Positions 1 through 25,367 of a stretch of 64,000 nt of DNA are shown piece after piece (the stretch's first letter is position 1; each line of letters opens with the position of its first letter). Source of the stretch: Octopus sinensis (lineage: Eukaryota); NCBI RefSeq assembly GCF_006345805.1, contig NC_043021.1, positions 23,374,001-23,438,000 on the forward strand, in the 5' to 3' direction. The position numbers and the translations under genes are program-made. Under the pieces are notes generated by a model. That model ran no database searches and was not told where the DNA came from. It saw only the letters and a list, made by a program, of their open reading frames with translations.

Positions 1-740
1 AAAAAGAAGGAGGAAAAAAAGAAGAAGAGGAAGAAAAAGAAGATTTGAATAAAAAGCAGAACAAGAAAAATAGGAAGAAGTAGAAAAACAAGAGGAAAAA
101 GGAATAGAAGAAGAAGGAAGAGGAAAAAGGAGGAGGAGGGGGATGAAGTGGAAGAAGTAGGAGTAGAAGAAAAACAAGAAGAGGAGGAGGAGGGGGAAGA
201 AGAAAAAGAAGAAGAAAAGAAAAAGAAGAAGTAGAAGCAGAAAAAATGAATAAGAAGGAGGACGAGGAAAAGAGGTAGAAGACGTAGGAAGAGAATAAGA
301 ATAAGAAGTAGAAGAAGAAGAAGAAGAAGAAGAAGAAGAAGAAGAAGAAGAAGAAAAGGAGCAGCAGGAGGAGAGGCCGAAGAATAAGAACATAAAGAAG
401 AAGAAGAAGGAAGATGAGGAGCTGGAGTGGAAGAAGAAGAATTGCAAGAAGAAAAAGAAGAAGAAGAAGACGTAGAAGAAGAAGTGGAAGAAGAAGAAGG
501 AGAAGAAGAAGAAGAAGAAGAAGAAGAAGAAGAAAAAAAAGAAAAAAGAAGTAGAAGAGAGAAGAAGAAGAAAAAGAAAATGAATGAGGACGAGGATGAG
601 AAGAAGAAGGAGAAGAAAAAGGAACAGAGGGGGAGAATTACAAGAAGAAAAAGGAGGAGGAGGGGCGGAGAGGAGGTGGAAGAGAATTAAAAGAAGAAAA
701 TGAAGAAGGAGAAGAGGAAGGAGAAGAAGAAGAAGAAGAA
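1..740 (+). repeat. Degenerate (GAA/GGA)n polypurine tract
   Basis: Almost purely purine GAA-rich sequence; its poly-E/K ORFs are artefacts. Confidence 0.95.
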
Positions 741-1673
741 GGCACATTGAAAATCATGGTGTTGAAGACGCAACTGAAAATGTTCTTAAAATATCAGGAA
801 ATAATTCAAGGATAGATCGATAAATTTTGGGCGAGAAGACATGGCTGAAAAATCAGGGAATATACGGAATCAGAAATCAACATATTCAAATGCACTCATA
901 CACATTCTTATATTCATAGTATCAACGACGGAATGCGCTATGCACACTCACATCACACATATTCCCACTCACCCTTGTGGACATATGGTGAGAGAGATTA
1001 TTTATTTCATATCGCTTCATTGTCACAAGAATATTAGAAAACACACGCTTACAAGAAATATATCAGCATTTTAATTGTATCAGGCCAAATATTCCAGCTT
1101 ACAAGTACAGTAAGTATTTCAGGTTTACAGATAGAATGTATGTGACTATATTATTCGATTATATATTTTCCGCTTCCACTTCAGTTGCTCTATTACATAA
1201 ATAACGTGAAGTGAATGACAAAATTCGAAGTTGAATGATAATATCGAAACATATAGTCACATTTCACACAGAACTACACTTATATATGAACATACACATA
1301 TACTTCAGCTTAAAATATTTGATGCAAACACGTAAACTCACAAACGTTACCATTTCTAATACAAATTCATATCAAAATCATTGAAATTGGGGAACAAAAA
1401 TGAGTTATTTAGATGCGAATTGAAACAAAGCAACTACAATAAAGGAACATTATATTTTTCCTATTATTTCATTTTCTCTCTCAAATTCTCTCCCTTTATT
1501 TCACAGTGTCTCGCTCTCTCATATCCTCTTTGTATCTTCCTAAATCTTGTTCATTCTACAAATTCGAATTGATTTTGTTTGGTGCAGTCAGAAATTTTAT
1601 ACATTTGTGAGCTTATATATCAGCATCAATTATTACTTTCGGAAAATAGTATCAAGAAACTGAACGAACTTAC

Positions 1674-1745
1674 AATTCTTTTAAATTTGAAAGCCCCGTG
1701 AATGCACCTTCTTTGATGGTTTCAATGTTGTTGGCACCAAGAACT
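1674..1745 (-). CDS. 72-bp LRR exon (cassette A): (L)VLGANNIETIKEGAFTGLSNLKEL
   Basis: ctttctttactgcgacag|AGTTCTTGGTGCC...AAAGAATT|gtaagt; 72 bp, phase 2-2, in frame with cassette B. Confidence 0.9.
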
Positions 1746-1824
1746 CTGTCGCAGTAAAGAAAGAGTAAAATAGATTATATGGAAAATATTTGTGATACGA
1801 CATCAAACACTGTGACTTCAGAAT

Positions 1825-2594
1825 GAAAGGAAGAAAAAGAAGAAAGATTACGAAGAAGAAGAAGAAGAAGAAGAACTAGAAAGGAGAAGGAGAAGGAGAA
1901 GAAGAAGAAGAATTAGAAGAAGAAGAAGAGGAAGGAGAATTGACGAGGAGGTGGATAGGCGGGGATGTTAGGAGGAGGACAAAGGAAGGGATGACTGAGG
2001 GGAGGGAGCTGGGTGTAGCAGCAGAAAGAGCAGGAAGAGCAGGAAGAATTGGCAGAGAATGGAAAAGAGGGAGACAAGTGAGGAAGCAGAAAGTACAGAG
2101 AAGAAAAAAAGAAGAAAAAGAAGAAGAAGAAGAAGAAGAAGAAGAAGAAGCAGAAGAAGAAGATAGAGAGAAGAAGAAGAAGAAGAAGAAGAGGAAGTAG
2201 AAGTAGAAGACAAAGAAAAGGAAGAAGAAGAAGAAGAAGAAGAGAAGAAGGAGAAAAATAAGAGGAAGAAGAAGAAGAAGACGACGAAGGAGTAGAGGAA
2301 CATGAAGAAGATGAAGTAGGAAAGAAGAAGAAGACGAAGAAAGAAGAAGAGAAGAAGAAGAAGAAGGAGAAGAAGAAGACCAAGAAGAAGAAGAAGGAGA
2401 AGGAGAAGAAGAAGAAGAAGAAGAAGGAGGAGGAGGAGGAGGAGAAGAAGAAGAAGAAGAAGAAGAAGAAGGTGAAGAAGAAGAAGAAGAAGAAGAAGAA
2501 AAAGAAGAAGAAGAAGAAGAAGAAGAAGAAAGAAGAAGAAGAAGAAGAAGAAGAAGAAGAAGAAGAAGAAGAAGAAGAAGAAGAAGAAGAAGAA
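1825..2594 (+). repeat. (GAA)n polypurine tract between the LRR units
   Basis: Pure and degenerate GAA runs. Confidence 0.95.
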
Positions 2595-3566
2595 GATACA
2601 TTAAAAATCATGGTCTTCAAGACGACCCTTAAAATGTTTTCGAAATATCAGGAAATAATTCAAGGATAGATCGATAAATTTTGGGCGAGAAGACATGGCT
2701 GAAAAATCATGGAATATACGGAACCAGAAATCAACATATTCAAACGCACTCATTCGCATTCTTATATTCATAGTATCAACGACGGAATGCGGTATGCACA
2801 CTCACATCACACATATTCCCACTCACCCTTGTGGACATATGGTGAGAGAGATTATTTATTTCATATCGCTTCATTGTCACAAGAATATTAGAAAACACAC
2901 GCTTACAAGAAATATATCAGCAGTTTAATTGTATCAGGCCAAATATTCCAGCTTACAAGTACAGTAAGTATTTCAGGTTTAAAGATAGAATGTATGTGAC
3001 TATATTATTCGATTATATATTTTCCGCTTCCACTTCAGTTGCTCTATTACATAAATAACGTGAAGTGAATGATAAAATTCGAAATTGTGTGATAATATCG
3101 AAACACGAAGGAGAATATTGAAATAAGAAATGGAGGAAGATGCAAAATATAAAATAAAGGAATAATATAGTCACATTTCACACAGAACTACACTTATATA
3201 TGAACATACACATATACTTCAGCTAAAAATATCTGATGCAAACATGTAAACTCACAAACGTTACCATTTCTAATACAAATTCATATCAAAATCATTGAAA
3301 TTTGGGGAACAAAACTGAGTTATTGAGATGCGAATTGAAACAAAGCAACTACAATAAAGGAACATTATATTTTTCCTATTATTTCACTTTCTCTCACATT
3401 GTCTCCATCTCACCTATTCTCTTTTTATCTCCCTAAATCTTGTTCATTCTACAAATTCGAATTGATTTTGTTTGGTGCAGTCAGAAATTTTATACATTTG
3501 TGAGCTTAAATATCAGCATCAATTATTACTTTCGGAAAATAGTATCAAGAAACTGAACGAACTTAC

Positions 3567-3638
3567 AATTCTTTTAAATTTGAAAGCCCCGTGAATGCAC
3601 CTTCTTTGATGGTTTCAATGTTGTTCCATTGCAGATAT
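3567..3638 (-). CDS. 72-bp LRR exon (cassette B): (L)YLQWNNIETIKEGAFTGLSNLKEL
   Basis: ctttctttactgctatag|ATATCTGCAATGG...AAAGAATT|gtaagt; exactly 24 codons, phase 2-2, typical LRR consensus; joins in frame to the exon at 7211-7401. Confidence 0.9.
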
Positions 3639-3717
3639 CTATAGCAGTAAAGAAAGAGTAAAATAGATTATATGGAAAATATTTGTGATACGATATCAAA
3701 CACTTTGACTTCAGAAT

Positions 3718-3948
3718 GAAAGGAAGAAAAAGAAGAAGAAAGATAACGAAGAAGAAGAAGAAGAAGAAGAAGAAGAAGAAGAAGAAGAAGAAGAAGAAGA
3801 AGAAGAAGAAGAAGACAAAGGAGAAGAAGAAGAAGAAGACGGAGAAGAAGAAGAAGAAGAAGACGGAGAAGAAGACGGAGAAGAAGAAGAAGAAGACGAA
3901 GAAGAAGAAGAAGAACAAGAGGAAGAAGCAGAAGATGCAGGAGGAGAA
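3718..3948 (+). repeat. (GAA)n tract at the right boundary of LRR unit B
   Basis: GAA runs with GAC interruptions. Confidence 0.95.
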
Positions 3949-4144
3949 GAATATCTTAATGTGGCAGCAGTTTCATGTTTATTTCTTACTTGACTTGCAC
4001 AACCTCGAGTATCCGCTTCGCCTCTCTATGTACCAACACACACATCCACACACATACACGCACATATACGCACATACACACATATATGCTCAGAAATATA
4101 CACACATATGTATATCTACCTCTGGGTGCGAGTATGTGTGCGAA

Positions 4145-4890
4145 CCTCGTCCCGGTAGTGGTGTTCTTTTTACCTGTCGATATAGTTTATTATCGAATCT
4201 AAAGGTGTTGTCTTCTAGTTCCCGGCGTGTGTCTTTGGAAATGTGTTTTGAAGCGTTCGTCCATCCGTCCGCTATGTTTTTCTACCCAGTGTTTGATTGC
4301 TTCCAGGCCCAAAGTGTGATGTATTTGTACAAAGATTAGTCAAATCTTTTAAGTATAGTACGTTCTGGGACAGTGGGTGGAATGTGTTTGATGAAATCCA
4401 TATCGTCTCGGGTATAGCTGGGCATTAATGGGCACAACGGTTTGAGGAGTATATCCAAAAGATGGCTCAGTTGTTGTGTTGGGGCTCAAGGTCCAGCAAC
4501 TGTTGGTCTCAATTTGATGTCAGTAAGTCTTAGTATTTTTATATGCTGATCCTTGCATTTTGGAGCATTCGCAGATCTTGGGTGATCCATAGAAATTACT
4601 CTCTTTCATTACAGAGCTGCATAAATAATCTTTCTCTTTATCTGTGAACGAACGTTGGTACTCATTTATCAGACTTTTGAGTGTATTCACTATTACTTTC
4701 TCCGCGTGTCTTGGTTCTTCCTTGTAGCAGGATTAGTCTGTTTCCAATATTTTATCTTTATAGTAGTTTTGGTCCGTGACTGCTTTCACCCTTCCCTAAT
4801 CGGTTTCTTTTAGGATGATTGAATTGTCATTCTTCAGTTTGTAAGCTTCCTTTTCTTCTTCACGAAGGTTCTGTTTGCATTTACGGATAT
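4145..4890 (-). mobile_element. Degenerate Penelope-like element reverse transcriptase fragment
   Basis: Minus-strand peptides SNFYGSPKI, DIKLRPTVAGP, LSHLLDILLKPLCPLMPSYTRDDMDFIKHIP, HHTLGLEAIKHWVEKH, EDNTFRFDNKLYRQVK match PLE RT motifs; stops and frameshifts present. Confidence 0.8.
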
Positions 4891-6609
4891 TTTATTATAT
4901 AAGATATAAAACAGATTTAAGTCACCGCGTAAAGTATGAATGAAAAACACACAAAATATGAGAAAAGAATGGATGTTCAAAATATTTGTGATTTGAATTA
5001 GATTTACAAAGCCTTCGTTGCAACATCAGTTTTCAGTGGAAGATATTTTTATCATCTCAGAAGTCAGCTTTATTTATAAATATCTTGTTTCTGTCCAATG
5101 AGCATTCTATTTGTTATTACACTTTGCTGTCAAAAGTAATTTATCTTTGCAAAAGTAAACTCCTTTCCTTTGCATAATTGATGCATAAAAGTTCTTCACA
5201 AAAATAAACCCCCAAAACTTCAAGACTGAAATAATAGACTAGAAAGGAAAACATAACAGAAATAGAAAGGGATTTATTAATAGAACTGGTGAAGGTAGAG
5301 TGGGGAAACCCTGATATAATTTTGAGTCATGTGCTACAAAGGAGAACAACCTTACATGGTGATTTAACTGGCTTAGGGTGTTATTTAAAAAAGGGATGTA
5401 ATTACATACATTGCCTTAGTTTTTTCGTCTTTTTTTAGTCCTTTGCTTCTTTTTCTTGTATTAAACCTCAGTTTGTTCCCATTATTAACTACCTATGCTA
5501 AATCCTTCATCCCCTAAGTAGCATCCCTCTTCATTATTCCTGTAAAGGTTGACCTGCAACAGCTCAAACGGAATATTAATGATATCTGCCTCACAAGTAT
5601 TGGAGATCTTGCAGGAGTTATAAAACGTGTCTGATCCTTTTTTCAAAATCGGTAAAATAAAAAGTGTGTGATTTTAACTCAGATCACAAACAACTGCACA
5701 ATATACTGCAAGGTGTCTTATTCGAGGTCCTCATAGTTGCATTTGTTCATTGAACTGTTATAAGTTTTTATTGATCTCGGAAATGAATGACGCAAGGTTG
5801 ACCTTAGCGGAACTTGAAGTCAGATTGCCGTGTGTCAGAACGCAATGTATTCTGCTAGACAGTCAAATGATCTGTGCCAAACCTCGCTCAAGTTATGAAC
5901 GATGAAAATATCTAACTTATTAAACAGAACTTCAACTTTACTATTCAACATCTTGAGTTATACGAGATTTAGGAATTCCATTATTGAAACTTTTCTCTTT
6001 ATTTTACATTAGGATTTCTCATTTTGTCAAAACGTTCCAAATGTTTTGAGAAATAGATCTGATCGAATGAATTGATCCACTTTAGTATTAGAATATTTGA
6101 TTAAAACTGAAAGTTTAAGGTGATTAATGCAATGATGCAAGCCAATTAACTGGAAATAATCACCTGGAAGAGCAATGTGTTCCAACAGAGTATTTGTTAT
6201 GATTTATGTATCAAATAATTACTCTTTTTTATTCTATTCCATTTCTTGAGATGTTAAATTTTAATAATTTACTTAAAAATTACGTAAGTTTTCAGGTGAA
6301 CGGAGATACATCAATCAGCCGAAACTTCAATTAACCTTCCATAATTTTGTAATAAGGTTTATTGTGTTCATGATAGGGTAAATTTTACTGATGACATTCT
6401 ATCAAAAATAAATTCCTCATAATTTGTTAAAATAACACTATTTTGATTTCTTCACTTAGGTATTTTAAGAATTTGCATTTAAGCGGATCTCGTCATTATC
6501 TGTTGTTTAATCCATCTGTTTCATTTTTAATTATAAAAATAATAATTTCTTCCATAGGAACAAACCTGAAATTTTGGGAAAGGGACAAGTCCTTTACATT
6601 GATCTCAGA

Positions 6610-6755
6610 GATAAATTGCTATTTATTTTACCGACTCCAAAAGAATGAAAAACAAAGTCAACCTCGACAGAATTTAAAATCGAAACGTAAAGACGAACGA
6701 AATACCGCTCAACATTTTGTCTGGCGTGCACAACGATTCTGATAGCTCGCTGCAT
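6610..6755 (-). mobile_element. Degenerate tRNA-derived SINE (Meta-core-like)
   Basis: Reverse complement resembles the 31326-31560 SINE (gactttgcctttcatcctttcggggtcgataaa core). Confidence 0.55.
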
Positions 6756-7210
6756 ATTCTATTATAAAATTAACAAAAAAAATAATTAACAATTATTCTG
6801 TGACACGATCAACTGATATTATATCATATTACTGTAATAATAAGCAACAATTCAACTAATTAATGATATAATATAACTATGTGGAATACACGTTTTCTTA
6901 GCACTAAAGTTTTTATACTGTCCGTTCATTGAATATACCGTAAGATTTGATAAGTTCAGACAAATGAAATCAAAGTCAGATACTAGTCATATCCAATCTC
7001 TGTGTATGCGATGTTATATATTATAAATTCAATATGGTAAGAAACAGTTTATTTGACTTCACAGCAGGTAACATATCAATTTGTTTTACTCTAACATAAG
7101 ATTGTGCTTAAAGCTGTGAGATGAACAGCATAAGCGATTAGCTGAGAACATATCAATGAGAATTTAAAATATTGGATGTGGAAAATACGTAGAAAGTGTC
7201 AAATACTTAC

Positions 7211-7401
7211 AAATATTCAACATTCGTCGGAATTGGTTGTGGAATTGATAGTAAATTGCGACGTGCACAATTTATTCTCGTTGTAAGTGAATTGCAAGTA
7301 CATATCTTGCATATATCTGAATCAGCTTGAGTCTCCAAAAACAATATCGTACACAGTATCAACACAAGAGACCGTCTATATGATACTACGTGGTGAAACA
7401 T
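7211..7401 (-). CDS. First coding exon of a secreted or membrane leucine-rich-repeat protein (signal peptide + LRRNT)
   Basis: Reads MFHHVVSYRRSLVLILCTILFLETQADSDICKICTCNSLTTRINCARRNLLSIPQPIPTNVEYL: hydrophobic signal peptide, then C-x2-C-x-C-x8-C LRRNT cap. Ends TT|GTAAGT (phase-2 donor at 7209-7210). An acceptor (ttttcttcttttacag, AG at 7422-7423) lies 20 nt upstream of the ATG, implying an upstream 5'UTR exon. Confidence 0.9.
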
Positions 7402-7951
7402 ATTGCCAGGCGTAGATTTATCTGTAAAAGAAGAAAATAGGAAATGTCAGAGATTTCAATGTTATTAACTTCAAATTGCAGATTCTCCGAAGCAACTAAA
7501 ATTCACACCTGGTCCACATGACAAATATATTTTTGTTTTCGTGATTGGATATTTAAAGCTAAAAAATTAAATTTCGATAAATTAGTGTGAAGAAATTTAT
7601 AAAAATATTATAGCTTTAACGCGTAATAATATCAAAGAAAACACCAAACACACACACACAAACACAAACGCACTCCTACACACATCTGTAACCATCTTCG
7701 GGGGTGGGGTCTAATATATTTACAAAACTAGTGAACCATGAGTTTCGTAGACCCTAAATACGCAGTGGTTGTAAACCCGGTTGGGTCGTTAAATCCGATG
7801 GGACCCCACAAGCAACTGTATTGTAACGAAGGATTTTTCCTTACCCCAGTTTTAGAAGCGTTCATACAAATTTTTCCTCAAATACACTTTCATGATTTCA
7901 TTTTACTTAATCTTTTTTTTACTGAAAACAAGAATAACGCATGAACGTAAA

Positions 7952-8864
7952 TCTATATATATAAAACTCAACTTGTGTGTCTCTCTGTGTATCTGTGTGT
8001 GTACCTGCGTGTTTAACTTCCCGGCAAATCTCCTCCTAGCCAACAAATCGTAGAACCACCAAAAATGGGTCACTTAAAGTTTAGGCGAATGAAAATTGAA
8101 CTGCGCTATTTCTGTTCCGAAATTCATCTCGCAAGTGCAAAAATCGATAATGTGTTTGTTTAAGCCTTATCCCATGCATTGAATAGTGAACTTTACTCAG
8201 TCAGCTGTTTGACGTGAACTGTGTTCACCACGCATGCAAGCATGCGTAAATTGCATGAAAAATAAATAATCAAGATATAAAAACGATGACTACTGTATTG
8301 ATGGCTACTGTATTGAAAGTGTTCTGGGTAGGCTGTGTGCAGTGCCTAGTAGTGCATTTTTCTGTATGTTATATGTGTTTGTAAGTCCTGGTGTTTTTAC
8401 ACACATACATTGTAGAAATTCGTCTAAGAAATGAATTTTCGGGATGTAGCCTGGAGGGTTTTTTCGTATTAATCGTTTGGACTTTGTGAACTCATGCCAA
8501 TTGTTTTCATAACATTTTTAACGCTTTGAATTAAATATGACCATTTTGCGTTGAGTCTGCAGTTTGAATCACTAACCAAATTTTAGCAGGTCGGATTTTT
8601 GATCATCACAATATATCGCCAGCGACTCCCTGAAACTCTCCTCTGATATCCTCGTTGAGAAATACTGTTCTAAAAGAATAATTCAACAATGCAATTATTT
8701 GATCAACAAAAATTTATGAAACACTTATACGTACTTCCTATTGAGGAAATGGAACACATAAGTGCAAAAATAGAGGGCATTAAATGCTTGATTTTAAAAC
8801 CAAGTTTAGCTTAATTCGCGCGTGCATAGAACGCACGAGCGCACGAGCCGGGCAATACTGCTAG
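7952..8864 (+). mobile_element. Non-autonomous Helitron
   Basis: 5' TCTATATATATAAAA at 7952, 3' GC-rich subterminal hairpin-like sequence followed by CTAG (8861-8864); inserted between A and T with no TSD. Confidence 0.7.
8300..8400 (-). mobile_element. Dong/R4-type LINE 3' fragment (family B) inside the Helitron
   Basis: Minus strand encodes KTPGLTNTYNIQKNALLGTAHSL; matches 12810-13110 and 33790-33983. Confidence 0.65.
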
Positions 8865-9057
8865 TGAACAAATGGACCTACATCAAACAAAGCAAATTTA
8901 TTTGGGGACACAAATAGACACAAGAAAATAAAGAAAGTGGATAAGGAAACAACAACAACAAAAGAAACATTGACAGCAAAACAAATTAAAAAGCTCAGAA
9001 AATTACATATACACTAATATCTATTTATCTAACAATTTATACATCTCTCTCCCCTTA

Positions 9058-9156
<99 letters not shown>

Positions 9157-9439
9157 GAGAGAGAGAGAATAATAAGGTATTCAAAACGTTGGATGATTAT
9201 AATTTTTTATGCATTTAAGTTCTATTTACATTTTAGCGGTTGCTTCCATTATCGATAACTATATATCTGTACATCACTTCAAACTCTCTCTCTCTCTCTC
9301 TCTCTCTCTTTATATGTATGCATGTATGTACTATGTATGTATGTATGTATGTATGTATGTATGTATGTATGTATGTATGTATGTATGCATGTATGTATTA
9401 ATAGATCGCTAGCCACTTTTTTTCTTTTATTCTCTCCCT

Positions 9440-9590
9440 ATTTCTTTCCGTGTTTCTTTCTGTGGAAGAGCGTAGGCTCGAAACGTTAAAAACTTTTTCA
9501 CTTCCCGAGCGTTATACTAATACATCAGGTTGCCTTCTACACCACCTGACTTCGTCTTTTGTTTCTTTTTTTGTGAATTCTCCCTGTATG
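9440..9590 (+). mobile_element. Short Penelope-derived-type repeat with a hammerhead-like motif
   Basis: CTGTGGA-A-GAGC-GTAG-GCTC-GAAA-CGTT at 9460-9487; same family as 43325-43520 (opposite strand). Confidence 0.5.
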
Positions 9591-9634
<44 letters not shown>

Positions 9635-9765
9635 ATATATATCAGATATTTCTAATTTTGTTGTTTTTGCTTAACATTAAAATAGCCTTCCTTTACATTC
9701 AAGAACTTAACACAACTGACCAACTTGCCATCAACACCGTCACAACATCATCTCACTTTATATCA

Positions 9766-9802
<37 letters not shown>

Positions 9803-9930
9803 TACTACTACTACTACTTCAACTATTATTATTATGATCATTATAATTATTTTTATTTTATTATTATTATTATCATTATTATTTTTAATATCATCATCAC
9901 CATCATCATCATCATCATCATTAATATTAT

Positions 9931-10486
9931 TGAGTGAGAGAGCAGTGCATGCCATCAAAGTGACACTGGGGTAAAATATACGATACCCAGTATACACATC
10001 ATGACTACCTGTCTGATAAAGGTGCACCAGGCACATGCATCACAACCATATGTGCGCGACATGGTGATCTCATATCAAGATAAACAGCACATGACCTTGC
10101 AGGTGGAGCCCAGTTAGAATTTTCTTCTGGTCGAGTAACCCATCCCGCTCAAAAGGTCCCTGAATAAGGGTTGTTTAAGGATGTTGAACAAAACACCCTT
10201 GTTTCCAGAGGTGAATTATTCAAGCCCCAAAGAATTTCTCTCAACACATGTCTATGAAGCTCCCCTACTACTTCTGCTCGTGATCAGAGATGCACATATC
10301 GTCACTCACTAAGGGACATGCTCAACTGGTTAAGGTCAAACAACTGACAAGCAAATCTCTGGTATTGAGCAGAATATTTGCTGTAGCCCATCTTTTATAC
10401 CAAGACAAAACAATGTACATGATAACACTTCCAATCAGTTAAGATCAGAAGCCATGAGAGCCACTGCCTGGTACTGCATCAGGGCA

Positions 10487-10487
<1 letters not shown>
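9931..10487 (-). mobile_element. ~560-bp non-autonomous element embedded in (TAA)n
   Basis: Homologous copies at 33307-33508 and 34638-35157; all three end ctctctcactca followed by (ATA)n; no ORF. Confidence 0.75.
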
Positions 10488-10520
<33 letters not shown>

Positions 10521-10524
<4 letters not shown>

Positions 10525-12654
10525 TATGTTTGACTTTTGCTTTATATTTGTACAAGTTGGCTCCAAGTCTCACCCAGAGACCTCAAGAGACAACAGGGTT
10601 GGAAGTTCATGTTGTTGTTATGCCTAGTGTGCCATATATTTGGGGGGTGGGGATGTTGTACTAATGAATGTCTAAAAAAAAAAAAAGTTTTTTTTTTTTT
10701 TTTTTTTTTTTTAAACCGAAAATTATGGTTGTTTTTTAAACCTTGAGGTTACATAGAGAGTATTTTGCGTAGGATATGAGCAGTTCCCATGAGCACTATC
10801 TTTTTGACTTCTGCCATTTTTGGGTTCCCTGGTATCTGAGTTAGGTAGCTATCAGCCCCTTTTGCTATCATTCCCAGGGCACCTATGACAACAGGTATTG
10901 TTTTAGTCTTCAGCTTCCACATTTTGCTGATTTCTATTTCAAGATCTTTATATTTGCTCAGTTTTTGGTAGGTCCTGACAGATACGTTATATCGATTGGG
11001 ACAGTCATATCAATGAGGAGGCATGTTCTTTGTTTGAAGTCTTTCAATATGATGTCTGGCCTATTTGCATCTATCTTCCTGTCAGTTTGAATGGTGAAGT
11101 TCCAGAGGAGTGAGATGTGGTCATTTTCAAGCACTGGGGGTGGTTTGTGTTCCACCAGTTTTTTTCATGGGGCAAATCCAGTTTTTACAGATTACCCAGT
11201 GAATATATTGTGCAGCTCTATCGTGCCTGTTGAGATACTCTGTAGGCGCTAGAAGACTGCACTTGGAGACCACATGGTCAATGGTTTCATTTTGTTGCTT
11301 GCATACACGACACGTTGGACTGCTTCTGATCTTTAATATGTTGGCCTGGTAGTTTCTTGTTGGTAGGCATTGATCTTGAGCTGCTATGATAAACCCCTCT
11401 GTTTCAGATTTTAAGCCAGAGGCCATTAGCCATTGATGGGTCAGGGCTTTGTCGATATCTGCATTATTCGCTCTCTTTGGGTATTTGCCGTAGAGAGGTT
11501 TTTCTTGCCATTTATTATTCAGAATATCTAAGGCCGCAGTTTTGGCACGGGTTTTCATGCGCCTAGCTTTTTCTGTGCTTGTTTCTTGTATGTCTATCTC
11601 TAATTCCGAAATTGGTTGTATTCGGAATTCACTTAGATATTCCTTTGCCTGTTTTGTGACTGAGTATGATGTTTTCTTGTTTTCATGTTTTGAGACAAGT
11701 TTTAACATCCAGCCCTCAGAGTTTTTCAGGTAGGTGTCTAGGCCAATTGTAGCAATCTTCATTGTTATTGCCAGTTGCAAAAGACCACGGCCTCCCTCTT
11801 TTCTTGGCAGATAGAGTCGTTCTGTATCTGCCTTAGGGTGGTGCATTCTATGCATTGTCAACAGTTTCCTTATTTTTCTGTCGAGCTGACATATTTCAGT
11901 AATTGACCAGTTAACAATATTGAAACTGTAAGTCACGACTGGTATAGCTAATGCATTGATTGCTTCGATCCTGTTTCTTGCATTCAACTCTGTCTTGAGT
12001 ATTGCTCTCACTCTTCGATAGCATTCTCTCCTGATCCTTTCCTTCATCTCTGAATGCCTTATTCCGTTCCCTTCAATTACCCCTAGGTACTTGTAGCTCT
12101 CCGCTGGGTCTAGTTCTTTTATGACATTCTGTTGGTCAAGGTTAACGTTAGATGTTTCTGTCATTTTTCCTTTGATAAAGGTAGCCTTTGCACATTTATC
12201 GAGGCCGAATTGCATTCTGATGTCGTCACTGAATTGTTTGACTATCGCTAGTAAGCCCTTGAGTTGTTGATCATTTTTTGCAAAAAGCTTTAAATCATCC
12301 ATGTAAACGAGATGATTTATATTTTTATCAAACATTTTATACCCGTACTGCGCGTCATTGAGCAGCTTTGAGAGAGGTATTAAGGATAAACAAAAGAGGA
12401 GTGGTGACAGTGAGTCACCCTGGAAAATGCCACACGAAATTTTTACATCACCAGCATTTAGGGATTCACTGTCACTGTTCAGAGTTAGTGTGGTTCTCCA
12501 TGATCTCATACTTACAGTCAAGAAGTTTCGCAGAGTTGGTGCTATCTTATACATTTCAAGGCATTTCCTAATCCAGCTATGTGGTAGGCTATCAAAAGCC
12601 TTTTTATAGTCTATCCAGGCTATTGATAAGTTTTTGTGTCGTTTGTTTTGTGTC

Positions 12655-12655
<1 letters not shown>
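10521..12655 (-). mobile_element. 5'-truncated Dong/R4-clade RLE non-LTR retrotransposon (family A)
   Basis: RT motifs IDYKKAFDSLPH, GIFQGDSLSPLLF, YMDDLK, YKYLG; CCHC knuckle CRVCKQQNETIDHVVSKC; RLE motifs RHD, RPDIILKD..IDMTVP, KLSKY; stop at 10749-10751; (TAA)n on both sides; frameshifts near 11130 and 10970. Confidence 0.92.
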
Positions 12656-12705
<50 letters not shown>

Positions 12706-12728
12706 GTTACCATTATTTATTATTATTG

Positions 12729-12794
<66 letters not shown>

Positions 12795-12809
12795 TATCAT
12801 TATCATTCA

Positions 12810-13110
12810 GTAGTTTTATTTTTATAGCGTGCTTTTACTTCACTACCGAGCGCAGCTCTGTATGCCTTGGGTATGTGCTGTGATTTGTTGTGATGCTCTG
12901 ATGGTTATTATATTGAAAGTGTTCTGCGTAGTGCAATTTTCTGTATGTTATATGTGTTTGTAAGTCCTGGTGTTTTTGTTATGTATTTGTCTGAATATTT
13001 TTTTATCATGCCTAATGCACCTACTATGATAGGAATTGTTTCTGTTTTTAGATTACACATTATGGTTACCTCTATTTCTAGGTCTTTGTATTTTGAAAGT
13101 TTTTCCGTTT
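12810..13110 (-). mobile_element. Dong/R4-type LINE 3' fragment (family B)
   Basis: Minus strand KLSKYKDLEIEVTIMCNLKTETIPIIVGALGMIKKYSDKYITKTPGL, then a 3'UTR ending in (TAA)n. Confidence 0.8.
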
Positions 13111-14149
13111 CTTTATTGTTATTATTATTCTTATCTGTGTCCGGTTTTGGAGACTAGTTGTTCGGAGCTCTAAGTTTTCTTTAGAATTTGTTGTTCCAAT
13201 GTCTATTTTCAAAATTTTATTGACGACAGAACCCACCTCGCTGTAAGCGGGGCTAGCTGCGGTGGCCAGAATTCGCCTCTTAAAGGTGAAGTTTGAGTTT
13301 TAAAAGCTACAAATTTATATTTTAAAAAGAAAAAGTTCAGCCTGGCTTCCCAAATCGAGGCAATAAAGGTTCTTACATCATCCGTTTTGACGTTTTGTCA
13401 CCTCCGCTTGTTAATATTTTTGAGAAACAATGCAAAGACAGCAGCAGCAGCAGCAGTAGTAGCAACAACAACAGCATCACAACCATCAGCACCAACAAAA
13501 ACATAACAGAAAAATGAAGAGGAGGCAAGGAATCAATCCACTTTGACCCTAAAAAAGAAGACACACCACCAGAAATAGACGGCTGATTCTTGGTGGTAGA
13601 TGTCCTCTTGGACATATAGGTCAAAACGAGCATCTTACAGATGCGGAAACTTTACAAACAAAACTATTCGGGTCAAGGCCTAAAATTGTGGGTGAAAATG
13701 GACAGCCAATGTCTGGACACAATTCCAGATATCATAAATTCACACGTTGGCACCAACCTCCACGTGGCCTTTGAAAGCTGATGGTTTCGGTATCATCTGT
13801 GTGGGAACACAAATCATCTAAAATTCTTCTATTGCCCACAACAAATTAGAGAAAGGAGCCTCTCAATTTTGCCAACATCATCAACACCACCACCACAGCA
13901 ACAATAGCAACAGCACCAACAGAGGCAGGTGACCATCGTGGCTACAAAATCAAGAATAACAGTAGCAGCAACACTAATCGCAGCAGCACGGGCAGCAGCA
14001 AAAACAACAGCATCAACCCCGGTCCCCACCACCAAAAACGCAACAACGTTATGAATAGGACAACGCCAAAAAGCTCTACAAGATTTGCCCCTCCCCTGTT
14101 CGGAGCACTCAGACATACCTTGCGCGGATAGGGACGACGAAAGACAAAA

Positions 14150-16660
14150 ATGGCAAGTAGTCGCCTGAACACACAAAAGAAAAAGAAACAGAACCCAAAA
14201 CACACAGACAATTCAGACATAGACTTGCCCAAATGCATCAATAAATTAACATTGATATTTTTTCACCGTTGTTGCAATCATCTGAAATGCAACTGTCAAA
14301 GCGCGATCTTCGAAAAAATTTTGTTGATAAAAGGCAAGTCATAAAAAGGGCTATTTCTAGTTACAAAAAAAGCACTTCTGGTTTTGTTCAAATGCTTGGA
14401 ACCAACAATGAAGCTAAATAATGTAGTTAGACAATTGCTCAATGTAAAGCTGAGAAAGGTAAACCTTTTACAGCCGGAGAATTTATCAAAAAAGATTTTC
14501 TGAGAAGTGCAAAACTTTTGTTCAGTGATCAAGCAAACGCTGAATAAATACTGTCTCGAATTCAAGAAATACCAACTTCTGCATGATCAGTTGAGAGACG
14601 TGTAACTGATATAGCTGAAAACATAATTATAACACAGAAAGTTAGATTACAAAAAGCTGCTGCATTCAGTGACCCCTATCGATGAAAGTACTCAAGTGAA
14701 TGACATGGCGCACCTAGCAATTGTTGCAAGATACTGGGACAATGATCGTATTTACGAAGAATCATGTGTTTTTGATTATTCCTCTTACCAATACATCTAC
14801 AGGACAGGACATCTGACTGCATTTCTAAATTATTTCAAAAATCAAGCCATTAATACAAATAAAATATTTTGTATTACTACTGGTGGTGCACGTGCAGTGG
14901 GTGGAAAGGAAAAAAAGATTTATTAAGCGTCTTGAAAATCACATTTCACGCAGTTTAATGTGTTTTAATTGCATTGTACATCAGGAAAATTAGTTGCAAA
15001 ACTTTCGTCACAAAGCTTGAGTTCTGTCGTGGAAACTGTTGTTAAAATAGTTAACTTCATGGTTTCTTGCTCTTCACTGACTCACAGACAATTTAAGTCT
15101 CTTCTGCAGGAACTGGACAGCGAATATGCAGACTTCCCACTTCACAGTAAAGTCCTGCAGCGTAGACTCGGTTAAAATTCCTCTCTCCCATTTATTATAT
15201 ATACGTGCATTCGAACGTAGAAGGGAACAGCTATCCGGTTGCCGCTATTTGGATCCCGTTCTGTCCACTACTCTGATTAGTTGGTATTGGCGCAATTTGT
15301 CGCGCCAAACTACCGCGTATCACCAGTCGGAGTCAGCCTGTTCTCTACCCCGTTTTGGCCTACTTCTCCTTATAAACGCTCCCCCTTTTCTCCTTTCGTC
15401 TTTTGGTTCCAGAACTTTTAAGGACTAGCCTCTGACCACAAAGACACAGCCAGTTCCAGAGACTTACCAACTTTGTCCAACAGCATTCCAACAACCTCCA
15501 TCTTCGTCGCTATCACCATGTCCTTAACGTCTTCAACATCATCTCTCTATGTACACAGCTCTGCAAGCGATGCACCCAGGTTCCAACACTTCACTGTTCA
15601 TGAATTACTTCATCATGGGTCAACAACAAATATACAACCAGTATGAATTCCTGTACAAGTTACCCAGGCAGCAGCATCACAGCCACGACATCACGTTCAA
15701 CATATACCTCTAATTGTCTCCTACATCTATGAACCCATACGCATACATTCTGTTCTCATGACGGCATGTCTATCGTTCAGTATACATGATGCACACACAG
15801 ACACATCTGTTAACATATCAATAAATCTTCTTTTAATCATTCTACGCGGTTGTCTCCTTTATCCATCTGGCAAATAGATGGTACTATCAATTTTCTCTTT
15901 ATTGTAAGGGCTGTGTGATGTGGTACTAAAGAGCCATTCTTGTCAACTCGCATCGCACGGTCCTTACAGTCCGTTGGCTTTGTCGGGGTAATGTTTTGAA
16001 CAGATTTGTATCATGCTTAGAAGAATATTTCTTGAAAGGAAACAGTTGCCAGAATTGAACAACGAAGACGGGTTATTTAAAATGATGCTTCTAAGTGACA
16101 GGTACTTGAATGATTAAAATTTGCATTTACAAGAGAGAGGTCAAAATGTACTTGATGATTTTGAATATTGGAAAGGATTTTGTTAAAATCAGATTTTTTT
16201 TGCGTGATAAACTTAGCAATACATAAAAATACTTTCCAAATGTAAAAGCTTATTCAAATCGATTTAATATTTAATAAAAACGAACTTCAAAAATATATTG
16301 CAACGTTGAAAGAAGAATTTTCCAAGTGAGATAAATATTTCGAAACAAATTCTCCTATATTTTCATTTCTCATGAAACCTGACTTTGAGGGATTTGAAAA
16401 CGAACTCATTTCATCTTTCCCTTTTTGGCTCAATAACAAATATACAGGATAGTTTTGAAGTGGAAATGATTGAATTAACCACTTCAGAATTATGGGGGGA
16501 AAGATTTATGGAATAACGAAAATCTCTTGAAAGAAGCAGCTTACAGAATTCAGTTGCCATCTTCAATCGCTGGGAGACGTTGCCTGAAAGATTCGGTTCT
16601 TTGAAGAAAATCGCCTCAGCTCGGCTTTCACCCTTTAGCTCAACATATACAGGATTACCC
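14150..16660 (+). mobile_element. Degenerate hAT (Charlie/SPIN/Buster-like) transposase, interrupted by a solo LTR
   Basis: Fragments DEST..NDMAHLAIVARY, ETVVKIVNF..LTHRQFKSLLQELDSEYADFPLHSKV|RWL..GNVLNRFVSCLEE, FGSLKKIASARLSPFSSTY; many stops. Confidence 0.8.
15156..15968. mobile_element. Solo LTR (Ty3/gypsy-like), 813 bp
   Basis: TG...CA termini flanked by GTCC direct repeats (15152-15155, 15969-15972); removing it restores hAT AAA GTC CGT TGG (KVRW). Confidence 0.8.
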
Positions 16661-16679
16661 CAAATCAACAGAACCTATA

Positions 16680-17373
16680 AAATTTCGGTTTCCGTCTACC
16701 CAATCCACTCACAAAGATTTGGTCATCCCGAGACTATAGTAGAAAACAATTTCCCAAAATGCCATGCAGTGGAAACTGAATCTGGATCTACGTGCTTGCG
16801 GAGCAAGTTTCTTACCACACAGCCACGCCTATGCATGTGTGTTTATGTATAAGTCTATATATACGATGGACAGGACAAACAAATATTTAAATAATATTTC
16901 TGACGTGCGTGTAACAAAGTTATTCTATTAAGTTGCATAGTTATAGAAAGATAGAGAGAGAGGGAAAAATAAATCATATATACGTGTGTGTGTATAAATG
17001 TTAAATCTTAAAAGAAAAGTAACAAAAATTGATTTCACTATTTGCGTTCTGAGTTCCTTTCCTGTCGAACTCCCCTTTGCCTTTCATTTCTCAGAGGTGC
17101 TGAAGTCCAATTACTCGACTTTCGACCTTCCCCACAAAAACACAACCACTGGCCTTGTACCTAATCCAGAAACCACTTAGTAGGTGGCAATCTAGGATTT
17201 TAGGACAAAGAATTGCTACGCGGTGTCATATGTAATCATGTATGATTATACAAAGATGCATGAGGATATATATACATACACAAACGCGCACAAATATATG
17301 TGTGTATGAGTGTGTGTGTGCACATGAGTGTGTGTATCTATGTACATTTGTATATATATATATATATATATAA

Positions 17374-17416
<43 letters not shown>

Positions 17417-17863
17417 GTATATATGTATGTACAAGCGAGCGTGTGTCTACATGCGTGTGTGAATACATGCACATATGTACGAAGCGAAACATTCACACAC
17501 ACACACACACGTATATATATAGGTATATAAATACATAGATATATATTCATACGCATTTAGATGTATACACACGCATATATGTGTATTCTTTTTCTTTAAT
17601 TCTTTTACTTGTTGAAGTCATTTGCCTGCGCCCATGCTGGAGCACTATATCAAAAGCCTTGAAGCCCAATAAATTGACATCAGGGTATATTATTTGTAAG
17701 CCAAATACTTATTTTATTGGCCTCTTTTGCCGAACCGCAATGTTAAGGAGGGGAGCGTAAAAAACCTGCAGTCAAGATATGAAAGGGTAACAAACATAGT
17801 CGCAAAGACAGAAGAAACACACATATACACAAAAAAACTCACACATATATGCATCAATATATA

Positions 17864-17956
<93 letters not shown>

Positions 17957-18739: not shown

Positions 18740-19450
18740 CAGCAGCTATCCGATAAGTATACTGAATGAAATACCCGGTGGTAATAATTCTCTATATTTT
18801 TTTTAAACGAGAGTGGCAGTATTTTCCTTTGTTGTGTGTGATTGGCTTAAATTCTTTAATATCCGGAAAATAAATCCATTTTCCAGCTATCCACCATTCC
18901 TACACGTCAAGTGTTGAAATGGTCACTGTGTAACATGAGATGAAGTGTCTTTCGCGCCATACGCCTCTCGGGTCTGTATTTGAAATCACGACCTTGTTAT
19001 CGTGAATAGCATCCCTAATCACGACTTCATGTGTTCTCGACTTCTTTTATATTACCAAAACTTTATTTTTCATATGTCCTGACAACACCCAGAGAATATT
19101 CTTATCTACTTGACGCTTTTCTAAAACAAACGCCATTGTTTTTGTCGATTATTGGGATGGCGATATCTGCTCAAAGATACGACCTCATCTCTCTAGTTAC
19201 TAAAATGCAAACCCGACGAATTTTCCTCGTTTCCCAGAATATATTTCAGTTGTTTCTAAAGAATGCTTGTTGTTCACTGGTGACAAGACTATGATCAGAG
19301 GCGTTTCGGTCATGATCATCCCGTCGATTCACTTATACTGCAATGTGTGTTGTGTCCTTTCCGTTGTTAAGACGGTAGGGCGTGAGACAATGGAATATCA
19401 TTGTCTCAAATGCTCACGATAGGGCTGATAGCGCAAATGTTCAAGTAATG
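18740..19450 (-). mobile_element. Highly degenerate mariner-like transposase relic
   Basis: Weak resemblance to mariner catalytic-region motifs (e.g. IHDN); heavily disrupted. Confidence 0.35.
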
Positions 19451-20515: not shown

Positions 20516-21811
20516 CAGTCTCAAACAATGAAAATTATTTTAGAATTCTCTATCTTATATTTTCCTTACACGCTCCCATACACACACACATATATATATA
20601 GATATATTTAACACCTTTTAGCTGAAGGCAGAGATTTATTGCATAGATTAAATTAAAGTATATGAAGAAGACAAGCTTTATATTTTTTATTTCAGGAAAA
20701 AATTGATTCTCAAATTTTGAATTTCCTTGAAATATAAAAATCCAAAACATTTTCTGTCTTTCAAATTTATCAACTATTTTTGAGATTCTTTAAAAACATA
20801 TAAACATTCTCTTCTTGTAAACATACTTGAAATCCTGGACACAATTTTTATTGTTTATAAAATGATTTGAGAAAACCAGCTCAACTGTGAATATAAAAGT
20901 ATGTATATTCGAGTTCATGTATGTATGAATGTATGTATGTATGTATGTATATATGTATGTATCTATGTATGTATGAATGTATGTACGTATGTATGTATGT
21001 CTCTGCGTATGTATGTATGTATGTCTGTATGTATGTATGTATGTATGAATGTATGTATGTATGTTTGTATGTATGTATGTATGTTTGTATGTATGTATGT
21101 ATGTATGTTTGTATGTATGTATGTTTGTATGTATGTATGTATGTATATATGTATGTATGTATGTATGTATGTAAAGCATATAAAAATTTATATAATGATC
21201 AAGCTATAAAAATATTCTATATATAAAAATTAGTCAGAAAAAGGCAGATATACAGTAAAAATATAATTACACATTTATTGGATGGCTGTTGATTCTCAAG
21301 AGTTCCTCCGCCCTTTAACGGGTTTTGTTTCTCTTGTCCAATAAACACCCTCCTCACCAAGCAAGCTTGGTGTACGTATGTATGCATGTTTAGAAAACCA
21401 TCATTGAAGCATGCTGTAAATGTGTTAGTACCTGATAAACTTGCTACATTTTCGAAAATAGCAATTCCACAAATAGATACACATAAAATATGCGCCAGAC
21501 CTAGAGAGAAATATTGGGGTTCATATGATCGATCGAACATACCAAGTTAATGCTCCTGGATGGCCACGCTTCAATGATTAACTCACATATTATATAGCTT
21601 GAAATATCTCCACTGCCACCACCATTTAGTCTGTTAATTTATATCCATCTACAAACGTCACACTCACCCTTCAATTATTATTCATGTCTCTCTTTCTCAT
21701 CTACAATGTACACTTTTACATAATTATTTCCATTTCTCTTTCAATTCACTGGACAATTCCACAGAATTCATCAATAATATTTCGAAATCCTTCTTTGTTT
21801 CCTTAGCAGGT

Positions 21812-22908
21812 CTGGTTCTGAGTTTTTTTTCTCTCTCCTTTCTTCTACTCTTCCTTCTTTGTTTCCTTAGCAGGTCTCGATGCCTCTCTTTTATCTCTTC
21901 ATATAGCAGCTTTAGCCCTTCTCTTTCCTCCTCCTTTGCCTCCCTCAATCTGGTTCTGAGTTTTTTTTCTCTCTCCTTTCTTCTACTCTTCCTTCTTTGT
22001 TTCCTTAGCAGGTCTCGATGCCTCTTTTTATCTCTTCATATAGCTACTTTAGCCCTTCTCTTTCCTCCTCCTTTGCCTCCCTCCATCTGGTTCTGAGTTT
22101 TTTTCTCTCTCCTTTCTTCTACTCTTCCTTCTTTGTTTCCTTAGCAGGTCTCGATGCCTCTCTTTTATCTCTTCATATAGCTGCTTTAGCCCTTCTCTTT
22201 CCTCCTCCTTTGCCTCCCTCCATCTGGTTCTGAGTTTTTTTTCTCTCTCCTTTCTTCTACTCTTCCTTCTTTGTTCCTTAGCAGGTCTCGATGCCTCTTT
22301 TTTATCTCTTCATATAGCTTCTTTAGCCCTCTCTTTCCTCTCCTTTGCCTCCCTCCATCTGGTTCTGAGTTTTTTTTCTCTCTCCTTTCTTCTACTCTTC
22401 CTTCTTTGTTTCCTTAGCAGGTCTCGATGCCTCTCTTTTATCTCTTCATATAGCTACTTTAGCCCTTCTCTTTCCTCCTCCTTTGCCTCCCTCCATCTGG
22501 TTCTGAGTTTTTTTTCTCTCTCCTTTCTTCTACTCTTCCTTCTTTGTTTCCTTAGCAGGTCTCGATGCCTCTCTTTTATCTCTTCATATAGCTACTTTAG
22601 CCCTTCTCTTTCCTCCTCCTTTGCCTCCCTCCATCTGGTTCTGAGTTTTTTTCTCTCTCCTTTCTTCTACTCTTCCTTCTTTGTTTCCTTAGCAGGTCTC
22701 GATGCCTCTCTTTTATCTCTTCATATAGCTGCTTTAGCCCTTCTCTTTCCTCCTCCTTTGCCTCCCTCCATCTGGTTCTGAGTTTTTTTCTCTCTCCTTT
22801 CTTCTACTCTTCCTTCTTTGTTTCCTTAGCAGGTCTCGATGCCTCTCTTTTATCTCTTCATATAGCTGCTTTAGCCCTTCTCTTTCCTCCTCCTTTGCCT
22901 CCCCATCT
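21812..22908 (-). repeat. 135-138-bp tandem repeat, 8 units, running into the assembly gap
   Basis: ctggttctgag recurs at 21812, 21950, 22087, 22224, 22359, 22497, 22635, 22772; the 138-bp unit is 46 stop-free codons on the minus strand. Confidence 0.95.
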
Positions 22909-23008
22909 NNNNNNNNNNNNNNNNNNNNNNNNNNNNNNNNNNNNNNNNNNNNNNNNNNNNNNNNNNNNNNNNNNNNNNNNNNNNNNNNNNNNNNNNNNNN
23001 NNNNNNNN
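22909..23008. other. Assembly gap (100 N)
   Basis: Run of N; ORFs that span it are artefacts. Confidence 1.

Positions 23009-25278: not shown

Positions 25279-25367
<89 letters not shown>

Follow-up and report, generated by a model that had tools for sequence, protein, structure and literature searches.

In Slit and in the LGR/glycoprotein-hormone-receptor genes, each leucine-rich repeat (LRR) is encoded by one exon of ~72 bp and the introns lie in one phase; Little and colleagues reportedly described such a one-LRR-per-exon structure for Slit in 2002. The variable lymphocyte receptors (VLRs) of lamprey and hagfish, plant NLR and RLP proteins, and the sea-urchin and amphioxus TLR expansions are LRR repertoires under diversifying selection. 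Here we describe an Octopus sinensis gene on the minus strand of a 64,000-nucleotide stretch of contig NC_043021.1 (positions 23,374,001 to 23,438,000; hereafter the window) that begins a tandem array of symmetric 72-nt exons. As in Slit/LGR-type genes, each exon encodes one 24-residue LRR and could be duplicated or skipped in frame. Whereas the LRR exons of those genes are old and divergent throughout, the octopus exons and their introns are near-identical except in four codons, lie in tandem units with (TTC)n tracts, and form arrays that differ among closely related loci. The likeness to VLRs and other LRR repertoires is that the scaffold is constant and the variability falls on the x positions of LxxLxLxxN, with Y, W, D, N and R common in octopus. 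We consider it likely that these genes reflect concerted evolution of the framework of a tandem array of one-LRR, 72-nt exons, with diversity kept at the binding face.

Three exons of the gene lie in the window, and their spliced product matches a set of Octopus sinensis proteins in which exon 1 is almost the same (protein search). These are isoforms X3 to X9 of a single gene (XP_036369232-38, with P0036 and P0037 among them) on the 28.9-Mb chromosome record CM016883.1; isoforms X1 and X2 were not among the proteins matched in the family searches. Isoforms that include either of the two 72-nt exons in the window, the cassettes c1 and c2, carry these at 100% identity (tblastn).

7211-7421, minus strand: first coding exon, with its acceptor at 7421/7422, ATG at 7401 and a gtaagt donor after 7211; its last 2 nt belong to a split codon (phase 2)
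3639-7210, minus strand: intron 1, with 94 to 97% identity to intron 1 of five paralogous loci as far as the first (TTC)n tract
3567-3638, minus strand: LRR cassette exon c1, 72 nt, phase 2-2, encoding YLQWNNIETIKEGAFTGLSNLKE(L), 100% to P0036/P0037
1674-1745, minus strand: LRR cassette exon c2, 72 nt, phase 2-2, encoding VLGANNIETIKEGAFTGLSNLKE(L), 100% to P0036/P0037

The coding part of exon 1 (7401-7211) yields MFHHVVSYRRSLVLILCTILFLETQADSDICKICTCNSLTTRINCARRNLLSIPQPIPTNVEYL, in which a hydrophobic leader comes first, then a cluster of four cysteines that resembles an LRRNT, and last the beginning of LRR1 (...NVEYL). The leader, MFHHVVSYRRSLVLILCTILFLETQA|DS, is signal-peptide-like with a TQA|DS junction by inspection, and the cysteine cluster, CKICTCNSLTTRINC, contains the pattern CxxCxC...C. 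Pfam LRRNT matched the window product weakly and below the cut-off (E 0.0017); LRR_8 matched at E 4.9e-15 for the 112-aa window product and at 6e-94 for P0037, whose residues 3-72 are matched by exon 1 at 100% (tblastn). An earlier note on this DNA had drawn the right boundary of the feature at 7421, which is the acceptor of this start-codon exon with its signal-peptide-like leader and LRRNT-like cysteines. It had also read the gene as a secreted or surface LRR receptor, and the signal-peptide-like N-terminus, the LRRNT cysteines and the LRR_8 match (E 5e-15) would agree with that reading. The gene continues beyond the left edge of the window, where the next cassette unit is expected and where P0036 and P0037 would imply more cassettes. 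The further cassettes that the note had proposed to look for are present: the annotated models of the window gene carry 11 distinct cassettes (nine beyond c1 and c2), with 8 to 10 per isoform.

On the minus strand c1 begins ATATCTGCAATGG... and c2 begins AGTTCTTGGTGCC..., both are flanked by ag| and |gtaagt, and both match the consensus LxxLxLxxNxIxxIxxxxFxxLxx. Each carries 1 nt of a split codon at its start (the third base of a Leu codon) and 2 nt at its end, so that the flanking introns are phase 2. The pair had been described as two 72-bp phase-2 LRR exons that are identical over their last 59 nt and differ at 9 of nt 2-13, with the structural Leu kept through a synonymous change, and our comparison bears this out in full: 0/59 differences, 9 differences within nt 2-13, and a Leu codon that reads CTG against CTT, a synonymous difference only. 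The divergence extends into the acceptor, which is tatag in c1 and gacag in c2 and differs at -5 and -3, giving a divergent block of 18 nt with 11 differences. The two exons are spaced 1893 nt apart, in agreement with the ~1.85-kb unit first estimated, and each tandem unit consists of ~1.1 kb of unique sequence plus a microsatellite block that is GAA-rich on the plus strand.

3626-3643, minus strand: hypervariable patch of c1, tatag plus exon nt 1-13, with codons x5 (Y), L6, x7 (Q) and x8 (W)
1733-1750, minus strand: hypervariable patch of c2, gacag plus exon nt 1-13, with codons x5 (V), L6, x7 (G) and x8 (A)
2597-3728, minus strand: unique part of cassette unit 1, which holds c1 and pairs with 743-1835
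743-1835, minus strand: unique part of cassette unit 2, which holds c2 and pairs with 2597-3728

Outside the patch, the alignment of the two unique parts (1071 columns) contains 40/1053 mismatches (3.8%; 96.2% identity) and two indels of 60 and 22 nt. Under shuffling, the worst 18-nt window was expected to hold 3.6 mismatches and reached a maximum of 6, compared to 11 in the patch, and the binomial probability of the patch is ~6e-9 after correction for the number of windows. The patch looks like a block that was replaced or shielded from homogenisation. Because two acceptor differences and a synonymous Leu change fall within it, a replaced or protected block accounts for it better than independent selected point mutations, and these same differences favour the patchwise conversion proposed in the earlier note, with protection from homogenisation as the alternative. 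For the c2 patch the nearest counterpart is a cassette with GLGD in paralog L003 (L003:17285), 11/13 identical with 2 mismatches, and this was the best match in the examined loci, none of which contained an exact donor. Given that c1 and c2 both have Glu at x12 (NNIETIKEG), which occurs in no other cassette examined, the two are each other's closest relatives. We therefore favour for this pair, from sequence comparison, a mosaic history in which a recent duplication or conversion of the whole unit would have been combined with a patch that was imported from another cassette or protected.

The c1/c2 contrast recurs across the gene family. We took five paralogous loci (L001 to L005) from the same assembly as the window and scanned them mechanically for exons, which yielded 22 cassette exons selected on their AG/GT bounds (2 in the window and 20 in the paralogs), 20 of them non-redundant. 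All 22 are 72 nt long and phase 2-2, and 21/22 have a gtaag-type donor at constant phase. L005 contributed 11 scanned cassettes plus one more that was found by tblastn only. Identical cassettes occur in L001 and L005, which are hence redundant with each other (haplotigs or duplicate assembly). Two cassette types alternate, type A with NNIxTIKEGxFTGLSNLKxL and type B with NKISRIEKEMFQGLHNLExL, and the non-redundant set comprises 12 type-A and 8 type-B exons from the six loci (the window and L001 to L005). Their divergence, with nonsynonymous (dN) and synonymous (dS) values after Nei-Gojobori, was as follows.

Upstream intron, -60 to -6: mean pairwise difference 3.6% in type A, 4.3% in type B
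Exon nt 1-13: mean pairwise difference 43.9% in type A, 35.2% in type B
Exon nt 14-61 (framework): mean pairwise difference 6-8.5% (type A about 8%, type B about 6%)
Exon nt 62-72: mean pairwise difference 20.7% in type A, 11.7% in type B
Codons x5, x7, x8 and x3: dN 1.06 (A) and 0.96 (B), dS 0.50 (A) and 0.21 (B)
All other codons: dN 0.067 (A) and 0.045 (B), dS 0.21 (A) and 0.095 (B)

As neutral yardsticks we used intron positions -60 to -6 together with the downstream 400 nt of intron, where the p-distance is 0.074 in type A and 0.064 in type B; the upstream 400-nt alignments, which are dominated by microsatellite, were left out. The protein data show the same distribution. Among 85 unique type-A cassettes from 59 family proteins, entropy was highest at x7 (3.32 bits), x8 (3.08), x3 (2.76) and x5 (2.74), intermediate at x18, x10, x2 and x12 (1.4-2.1 bits), and at most 0.52 bits at the structural L, N, I and F positions, and the variable sites held mostly Y, D, N, G, R, W and E. 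The per-codon comparison of 72-bp exons that had been proposed as a check thus places the variation at x3, x5, x7 and x8 instead of spreading it evenly, and the x positions that had been singled out from c1 and c2 are hypervariable family-wide. Because the flanks are homogenised and the patch codons are saturated, both a homogenising process and a force that keeps the four codons different are needed. The cassette architecture also recurs in Octopus vulgaris and O. bimaculoides proteins.

At L001 to L005 the gene head (upstream sequence of at least 1 kb, then exon 1 and the 3.3-kb intron 1) matches the window at 94-97.5% identity for at least 4.4 kb. Among the six loci this similarity stops at the first microsatellite block, and the arrays beyond differ in cassette order and content. 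The window segments that aligned to the heads are 3901-8286 and 12932-17900.

A long pyrimidine tract accompanies each cassette. Ahead of every one of the 22 cassette exons lies a tract of 190-1450 nt whose sense strand is (TTC)n-rich and at least 85% pyrimidine; in most cases it is 50-430 nt away from the acceptor. Three such tracts lie near the cassettes of the window.

3692-3970, minus strand: (TTC)n-rich tract before c1, at least 85% pyrimidine on the sense strand and GAA-rich on the plus strand, ending 53 nt upstream of the c1 acceptor
1804-2627, minus strand: (TTC)n-rich tract before c2, in two pieces (1804-2008 and 2011-2627)
1-770, minus strand: (TTC)n-rich tract downstream of c2, cut by the left edge of the window

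The other 60 kb of the window contains no such tract. At L005 all 25 tracts lie inside the array (10512-33149) and none outside it, and the locus of a neighbouring gene (L006), which has no cassette array, holds only two. That locus does not overlap the window and contains only a paralogous LRRCT and Cys-rich 3' part. Long GAA/TTC tracts are prone to instability in recombination and replication, and splicing repressors of the PTB type bind to U/C-rich tracts; the one property or the other could play a part in these arrays. The paralog models on unplaced contigs all stop at the contig end, 0.8-1.4 kb past a cassette, and the (TTC)n tracts probably explain why those contigs end where they do.

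To place the variable codons on the protein, as the earlier note had proposed, we examined an AlphaFold2 model of P0037, in which the pLDDT confidence score is mostly >90 across residues 40-390 (the LRR region). DSSP assigned strands at 71-73, 95-97, 119-121 and so on, three residues every 24 that correspond to x3-L4-x5, with x7 and x8 directly after the strand. In LRR proteins the x3-L4-x5 strand lies on the concave sheet and x3, x5 and x7 point towards solvent. The model thus puts x3-L4-x5 in the inner beta-strand, concave by established LRR structure, and on that geometry the variable residues are predicted to lie on the concave face and to face ligand. The solved structures nearest by sequence to the LRR region are IGFALS, LRRC15, LGR4/5, TLR3, LRIG1, LRRC4 and LINGO-1.

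The annotation (NCBI models) offers a second possible source of diversity. With lengths of 477, 501 or 525 aa, the isoforms of the window gene contain different cassette subsets: c1 and c2 are consecutive in X3, X6, X7 and X9, X5 is without c2, X8 is without both, and X6 and X9 include an alternative cassette, IVQM.... In the annotated sets (X3-X9 of the window gene, 13 isoforms of one paralog, X2-X5 of another) it is always whole 24-aa cassettes that distinguish the isoforms, each of the X2-X5 models of the latter paralog omits a different one of five cassettes, and another annotated length series (337/361/385/409 aa) also proceeds in multiples of 24 aa. Since every cassette is symmetric (phase 2-2), in-frame skipping is possible, just as the earlier note had claimed for single-LRR exons of this kind. 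Its further idea of combinatorial splicing fared less evenly: isoforms that differ by whole cassettes are indeed annotated, but some annotated cassettes are chimeric, and part of the pattern may be a mapping or cryptic-splice artefact. The chimeras join two genomic exons inside the framework at ...AAG|GT / ...AAG|G. At this type-A junction (...AAAGAAG|G(T)...) an AG precedes in every exon and a GT follows wherever the Gly codon is GGT, and the junction therefore forms a cryptic GT...AG pair. The chimeric cassettes are either true cryptic splicing or read mis-mapping. Because exon 1 is identical among paralogs and the framework is identical among cassettes over at least 59 nt, short-read junctions are open to mis-assignment. 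Combinatorial splicing, which rests on annotation models, is plausible but unproven. The L005 paralog isoforms P0046, P0056, P0058, P0061 and P0067 carry three chimeric cassettes, YLSENNISTIKEG+AFTGLSHLKEL and two others.

Under the explanation that we prefer, the repeat unit (1-3 kb) would consist of a conserved intron, a cassette exon and a long (TTC)n tract, and unequal exchange together with gene conversion would keep the introns and the exon framework near-identical, both within arrays and among at least six paralogous loci. The four codons of the LxxLxLxxN strand that are predicted to be solvent-exposed (x3, x5, x7 and x8) would be held different by selection for new variants, by selection against homogenising conversion tracts, or by short-patch import from other cassettes. 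The outcome would be a large repertoire of LRR binding surfaces that is encoded in the germline and borne on an unvarying scaffold. This scaffold would run from the signal peptide and LRRNT through n LRRs to the LRRCT, Cys-rich modules and an HRM-like domain, and in some members on to GAIN/GPS and a seven-transmembrane (7TM) domain; in-frame cassette skipping, as suggested by the annotated isoforms, would multiply this repertoire. That selection is the cause, that alternative cassettes are really used and that the surfaces bind ligands are steps that we infer.

Several observations weigh against this explanation. Gene conversion itself lowers intron and framework divergence, so that the dN/dS contrasts cannot separate positive selection from protected old divergence, although either would mean that a diverse binding face is selected for. 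The hypervariable codons show elevated synonymous divergence too (0.50), and the c1/c2 patch includes two differing intron bases, and for these reasons a block-replacement mechanism must be involved, not only selected point substitutions. Only two cassettes lie in the window, and the DNA-level pattern of its array beyond c1 and c2 is extrapolated from paralogs, some contigs of which may be haplotigs instead (the identical cassettes of L001 and L005). The isoform evidence consists of annotation models, not transcript reads, and some of these models are unreliable: the 13-isoform set includes chimeric cassettes (e9, e11 and e12) that are absent from the genome. Finally, the models of the window gene stop (P0037 ...FRVEDCG) before any GAIN or 7TM domain.

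The simplest competing account is an ordinary recent tandem exon duplication, in which the c1/c2 difference is a single accidental short-tract conversion or template switch of no selective meaning. A patch that is contiguous over 18 nt and includes two intron bases and a synonymous change is what a single replacement should leave, and the 11/13 identity of the c2 exon patch to the L003 cassette fits as well. However, one accident leaves the family-wide, codon-specific pattern unexplained: the same positions vary in all 20 cassette exons and in the 85 unique type-A cassettes, with 4-8% difference in the flanks and 35-44% in the patch. A conversion origin of the c1/c2 patch fits concerted evolution with a diverse binding face too. 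On this family-wide variability we rejected neutral exon duplication as very unlikely. A stronger contender is that regulated combinatorial or alternative splicing, a Dscam- or neurexin-like choice in which every cell or tissue would select its cassette subsets, with (UUC)n tracts as silencers or enhancers, is the main generator of diversity. All cassettes are symmetric 72-nt phase-2 exons, whole-cassette isoform sets are annotated (X3-X9; 13; X2-X5), and a pyrimidine tract precedes 22/22 cassettes and occurs neither in the remainder of the window nor outside the array of L005. Set against this, short-read junctions can be assigned in more than one way, three of the annotated cassettes are chimeric, through cryptic GT/AG sites in the framework or through mis-mapping, isoform length varies, so that the choice is not mutually exclusive, and the tracts could equally well be recombination or instability elements or hitch-hiking repeats. 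We hold this account to be possible, though less probable than not.

Two further accounts question the array itself. Collapsed or misjoined haplotypes, or mis-assembly around the GAA microsatellites, could be suspected given that the arrays break the assembly (every paralog model on an unplaced contig ends shortly past a cassette), that L001 and L005 are redundant and that the window has an N gap at 22909-23008. Yet the stretch that holds c1 and c2 is free of gaps, and the two differ by 3.8% and two indels, are consecutive in four annotated isoforms, and share their architecture with L005 (11 cassettes and one by tblastn), Octopus vulgaris and O. bimaculoides; we rejected an assembly artefact on these grounds and judge it extremely unlikely. 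The cassettes could also be donor modules that are copied into an incomplete gene, as in VLR-type somatic assembly. Here the likeness is superficial and consists in an unvarying leader and LRRNT ahead of LRR modules whose concave positions are variable. Donor cassettes of that kind would be without splice signals, whereas the octopus cassettes have canonical acceptors with a polypyrimidine tract, gtaag-type donors (21/22) and a consistent phase, as ordinary exons do; mRNAs in germline order are annotated and no evidence of rearrangement was seen. We rejected this account, which is barely conceivable for these genes. The octopus diversity thus differs from that of VLRs in being germline and exon-encoded, possibly spliced, without somatic gene-conversion assembly or a link to lymphocyte-like cells or immunity.

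By sequence kinship, the window gene is a member of an octopus LRR/adhesion G-protein-coupled receptor (GPCR)-related family. In its models the array is followed by an LRRCT (NPIEKYEDGAFLFLPSI...CGCHLPAF...), a 10-Cys module and further modules. A Ly6/uPAR three-finger reading of the 10-Cys module (CQTCSG...CCVGHLCNKNDF) is a by-eye impression only; Pfam gave no match and the structural model has low confidence there. Relatives in O. vulgaris, O. sinensis and O. bimaculoides, whose genes lie in clusters, add an HRM-like domain (a weak Pfam match), GAIN/GPS and a secretin-type 7TM domain. In Pfam searches P0120 combined 7tm_2 (E 3.6e-30) and GPS (1e-13) with LRR_8, and P0088 combined GPS (9e-11) with LRRs. 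P0037 shares 60-72% identity over 35-60% of its length with the O. vulgaris proteins P0088, P0096, P0104 and P0120, which have GPS and/or 7tm_2. The product of the window gene may itself be membrane-anchored. A further group of models (P0012, P0014-P0017, P0073 and P0084-P0087) has a common ...DESSSTGNGTEDR(T/A)AETNF terminus directly after '...DE' (e.g., ...TEDRTAETNF) and no 7TM domain, and other family members run from '...DE' on into GAIN, GPS and 7TM (RNID...). These sequences suggest an alternative terminal exon that would give soluble versus 7TM-anchored forms.

An octopus-specific expansion of adhesion GPCRs has been described as 'group 3' (Ritschard et al. 2019, PMC6408891), with LRRs in 5/22 sequences, tandem co-localisation, branch-level positive selection with no individual positively selected sites, and expression mainly in the axial nerve cord, suckers and skin; LRR exon cassettes, a hypervariable patch and splicing are not mentioned there. 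The family of the window gene probably belongs to this expansion, judging from relatives that are clustered and combine LRRs, GPS and a secretin-type 7TM domain, whereas the window gene's own models have neither GAIN nor 7TM. The immune role suggested in the earlier note found no support: nothing points to immunity, the kin are adhesion GPCRs, and the expression of the probable group 3 is mainly in nerve cord, suckers and skin (PMC6408891).

The array also resembles Dscam1, the clustered protocadherins and the neurexins, in that tandem similar exons lie in a surface-receptor gene with many annotated isoforms and the genes form a cluster with near-identical 5' heads. It differs from mutually exclusive clusters of the Dscam type in that isoform lengths vary by whole cassettes (in annotation models only), and from all three in that the octopus genes give no sign of cell-specific choice or homophilic binding; docking or selector elements were not found either, although no search was aimed at them. 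We think it unlikely that the octopus clusters of LRR/adhesion-GPCR genes work as an LRR-based diversity system in the manner of Dscam or the protocadherins, in which dozens of germline cassettes would be independently included or skipped via (UUC)n tracts and the combination of LRR surfaces on a cell (neuron, sucker receptor cell or other) would be particular to that cell and serve in self/non-self, wiring or chemotactile recognition, with arrays varying by haplotype or species through (GAA/TTC)n-promoted unequal exchange.

Already known are the one LRR per 72-bp exon, the hypervariability of concave residues and the octopus adhesion-GPCR expansion. In the searchable literature we met neither hypervariable LRR cassettes from any cephalopod nor the combination seen here, of concertedly evolving tandem cassettes with four free, predicted ligand-facing codons, array-specific (TTC)n tracts, near-identical heads and many cassette-level isoforms. 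Cephalopods are known for lineage-specific expansions of recognition molecules (protocadherins and GPCRs), and the molecular logic of the adhesion-GPCR expansion has so far been undescribed. That the predicted ligand-facing residues of a repeated LRR module alone are free to vary, amid strong homogenisation, is the mark of a repertoire under selection for many specificities of binding. Lamprey VLRs and plant resistance proteins follow the same design principle, which the octopus, with its large peripheral nervous system and its chemotactile suckers, encodes in exon cassettes that are ready for splicing. The pattern offers testable targets, namely residues to mutate, exons to track in cDNA, and repeat tracts that possibly drive array turnover or exon choice. 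It also accounts for the fragmentation of these genes in current annotations and for their inconsistent names (slit-, LRRC4-, LRRC15-, chondroadherin- or ADGRG6-like); isoforms of the window gene are themselves named LRRC15-, slit- or chondroadherin-like.

The other 56 kb of the window was searched for further LRR or family exons and held none, only two 5'-exon-like matches, and neither tRNAs nor Rfam families were detected in the window.

7738-7842, minus strand: upstream conserved segment, matching P0044 residues 11-45 (the N-terminal extension of a paralog model) at 89% identity

From its sequence, this segment is probably a shared 5' exon, untranslated region or promoter-proximal sequence. 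The second 5'-exon-like stretch, 19303-19401 (minus strand), matches P0074 residues 1-33 at 52%. Several family models begin upstream of the MFHH methionine (...DKSTPGNMFHH), and the start codon at 7401 is thus uncertain.

The remaining features of the window are repeats. A 4.6-kb segment (8287-12931) is missing from the colinear alignments with L001, L002 and L005 and contains an open reading frame at 11127-12713 (minus strand) for a 528-aa reverse transcriptase (RVT_1 5e-21, zf-RVT). By its sequence it looks like an insertion of a non-long-terminal-repeat (non-LTR) retrotransposon, though a similar element lies elsewhere in the L003 flank. Two related non-LTR copies of the long interspersed nuclear element (LINE) type, at 49811-54280 and 57088-61866 (minus strand), each encode an Exo_endo_phos endonuclease and a reverse transcriptase (in a 916-aa frame in the copy at 49811-54280), and both have an upstream ORF1-like frame with a CCHC-like motif. 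Fragments of a degraded third LINE-type copy lie at 23584-25447, and a 137-bp tandem repeat at 21811-22903 (8 copies, 97% matches) leads straight into the 100-N assembly gap at 22909-23008.

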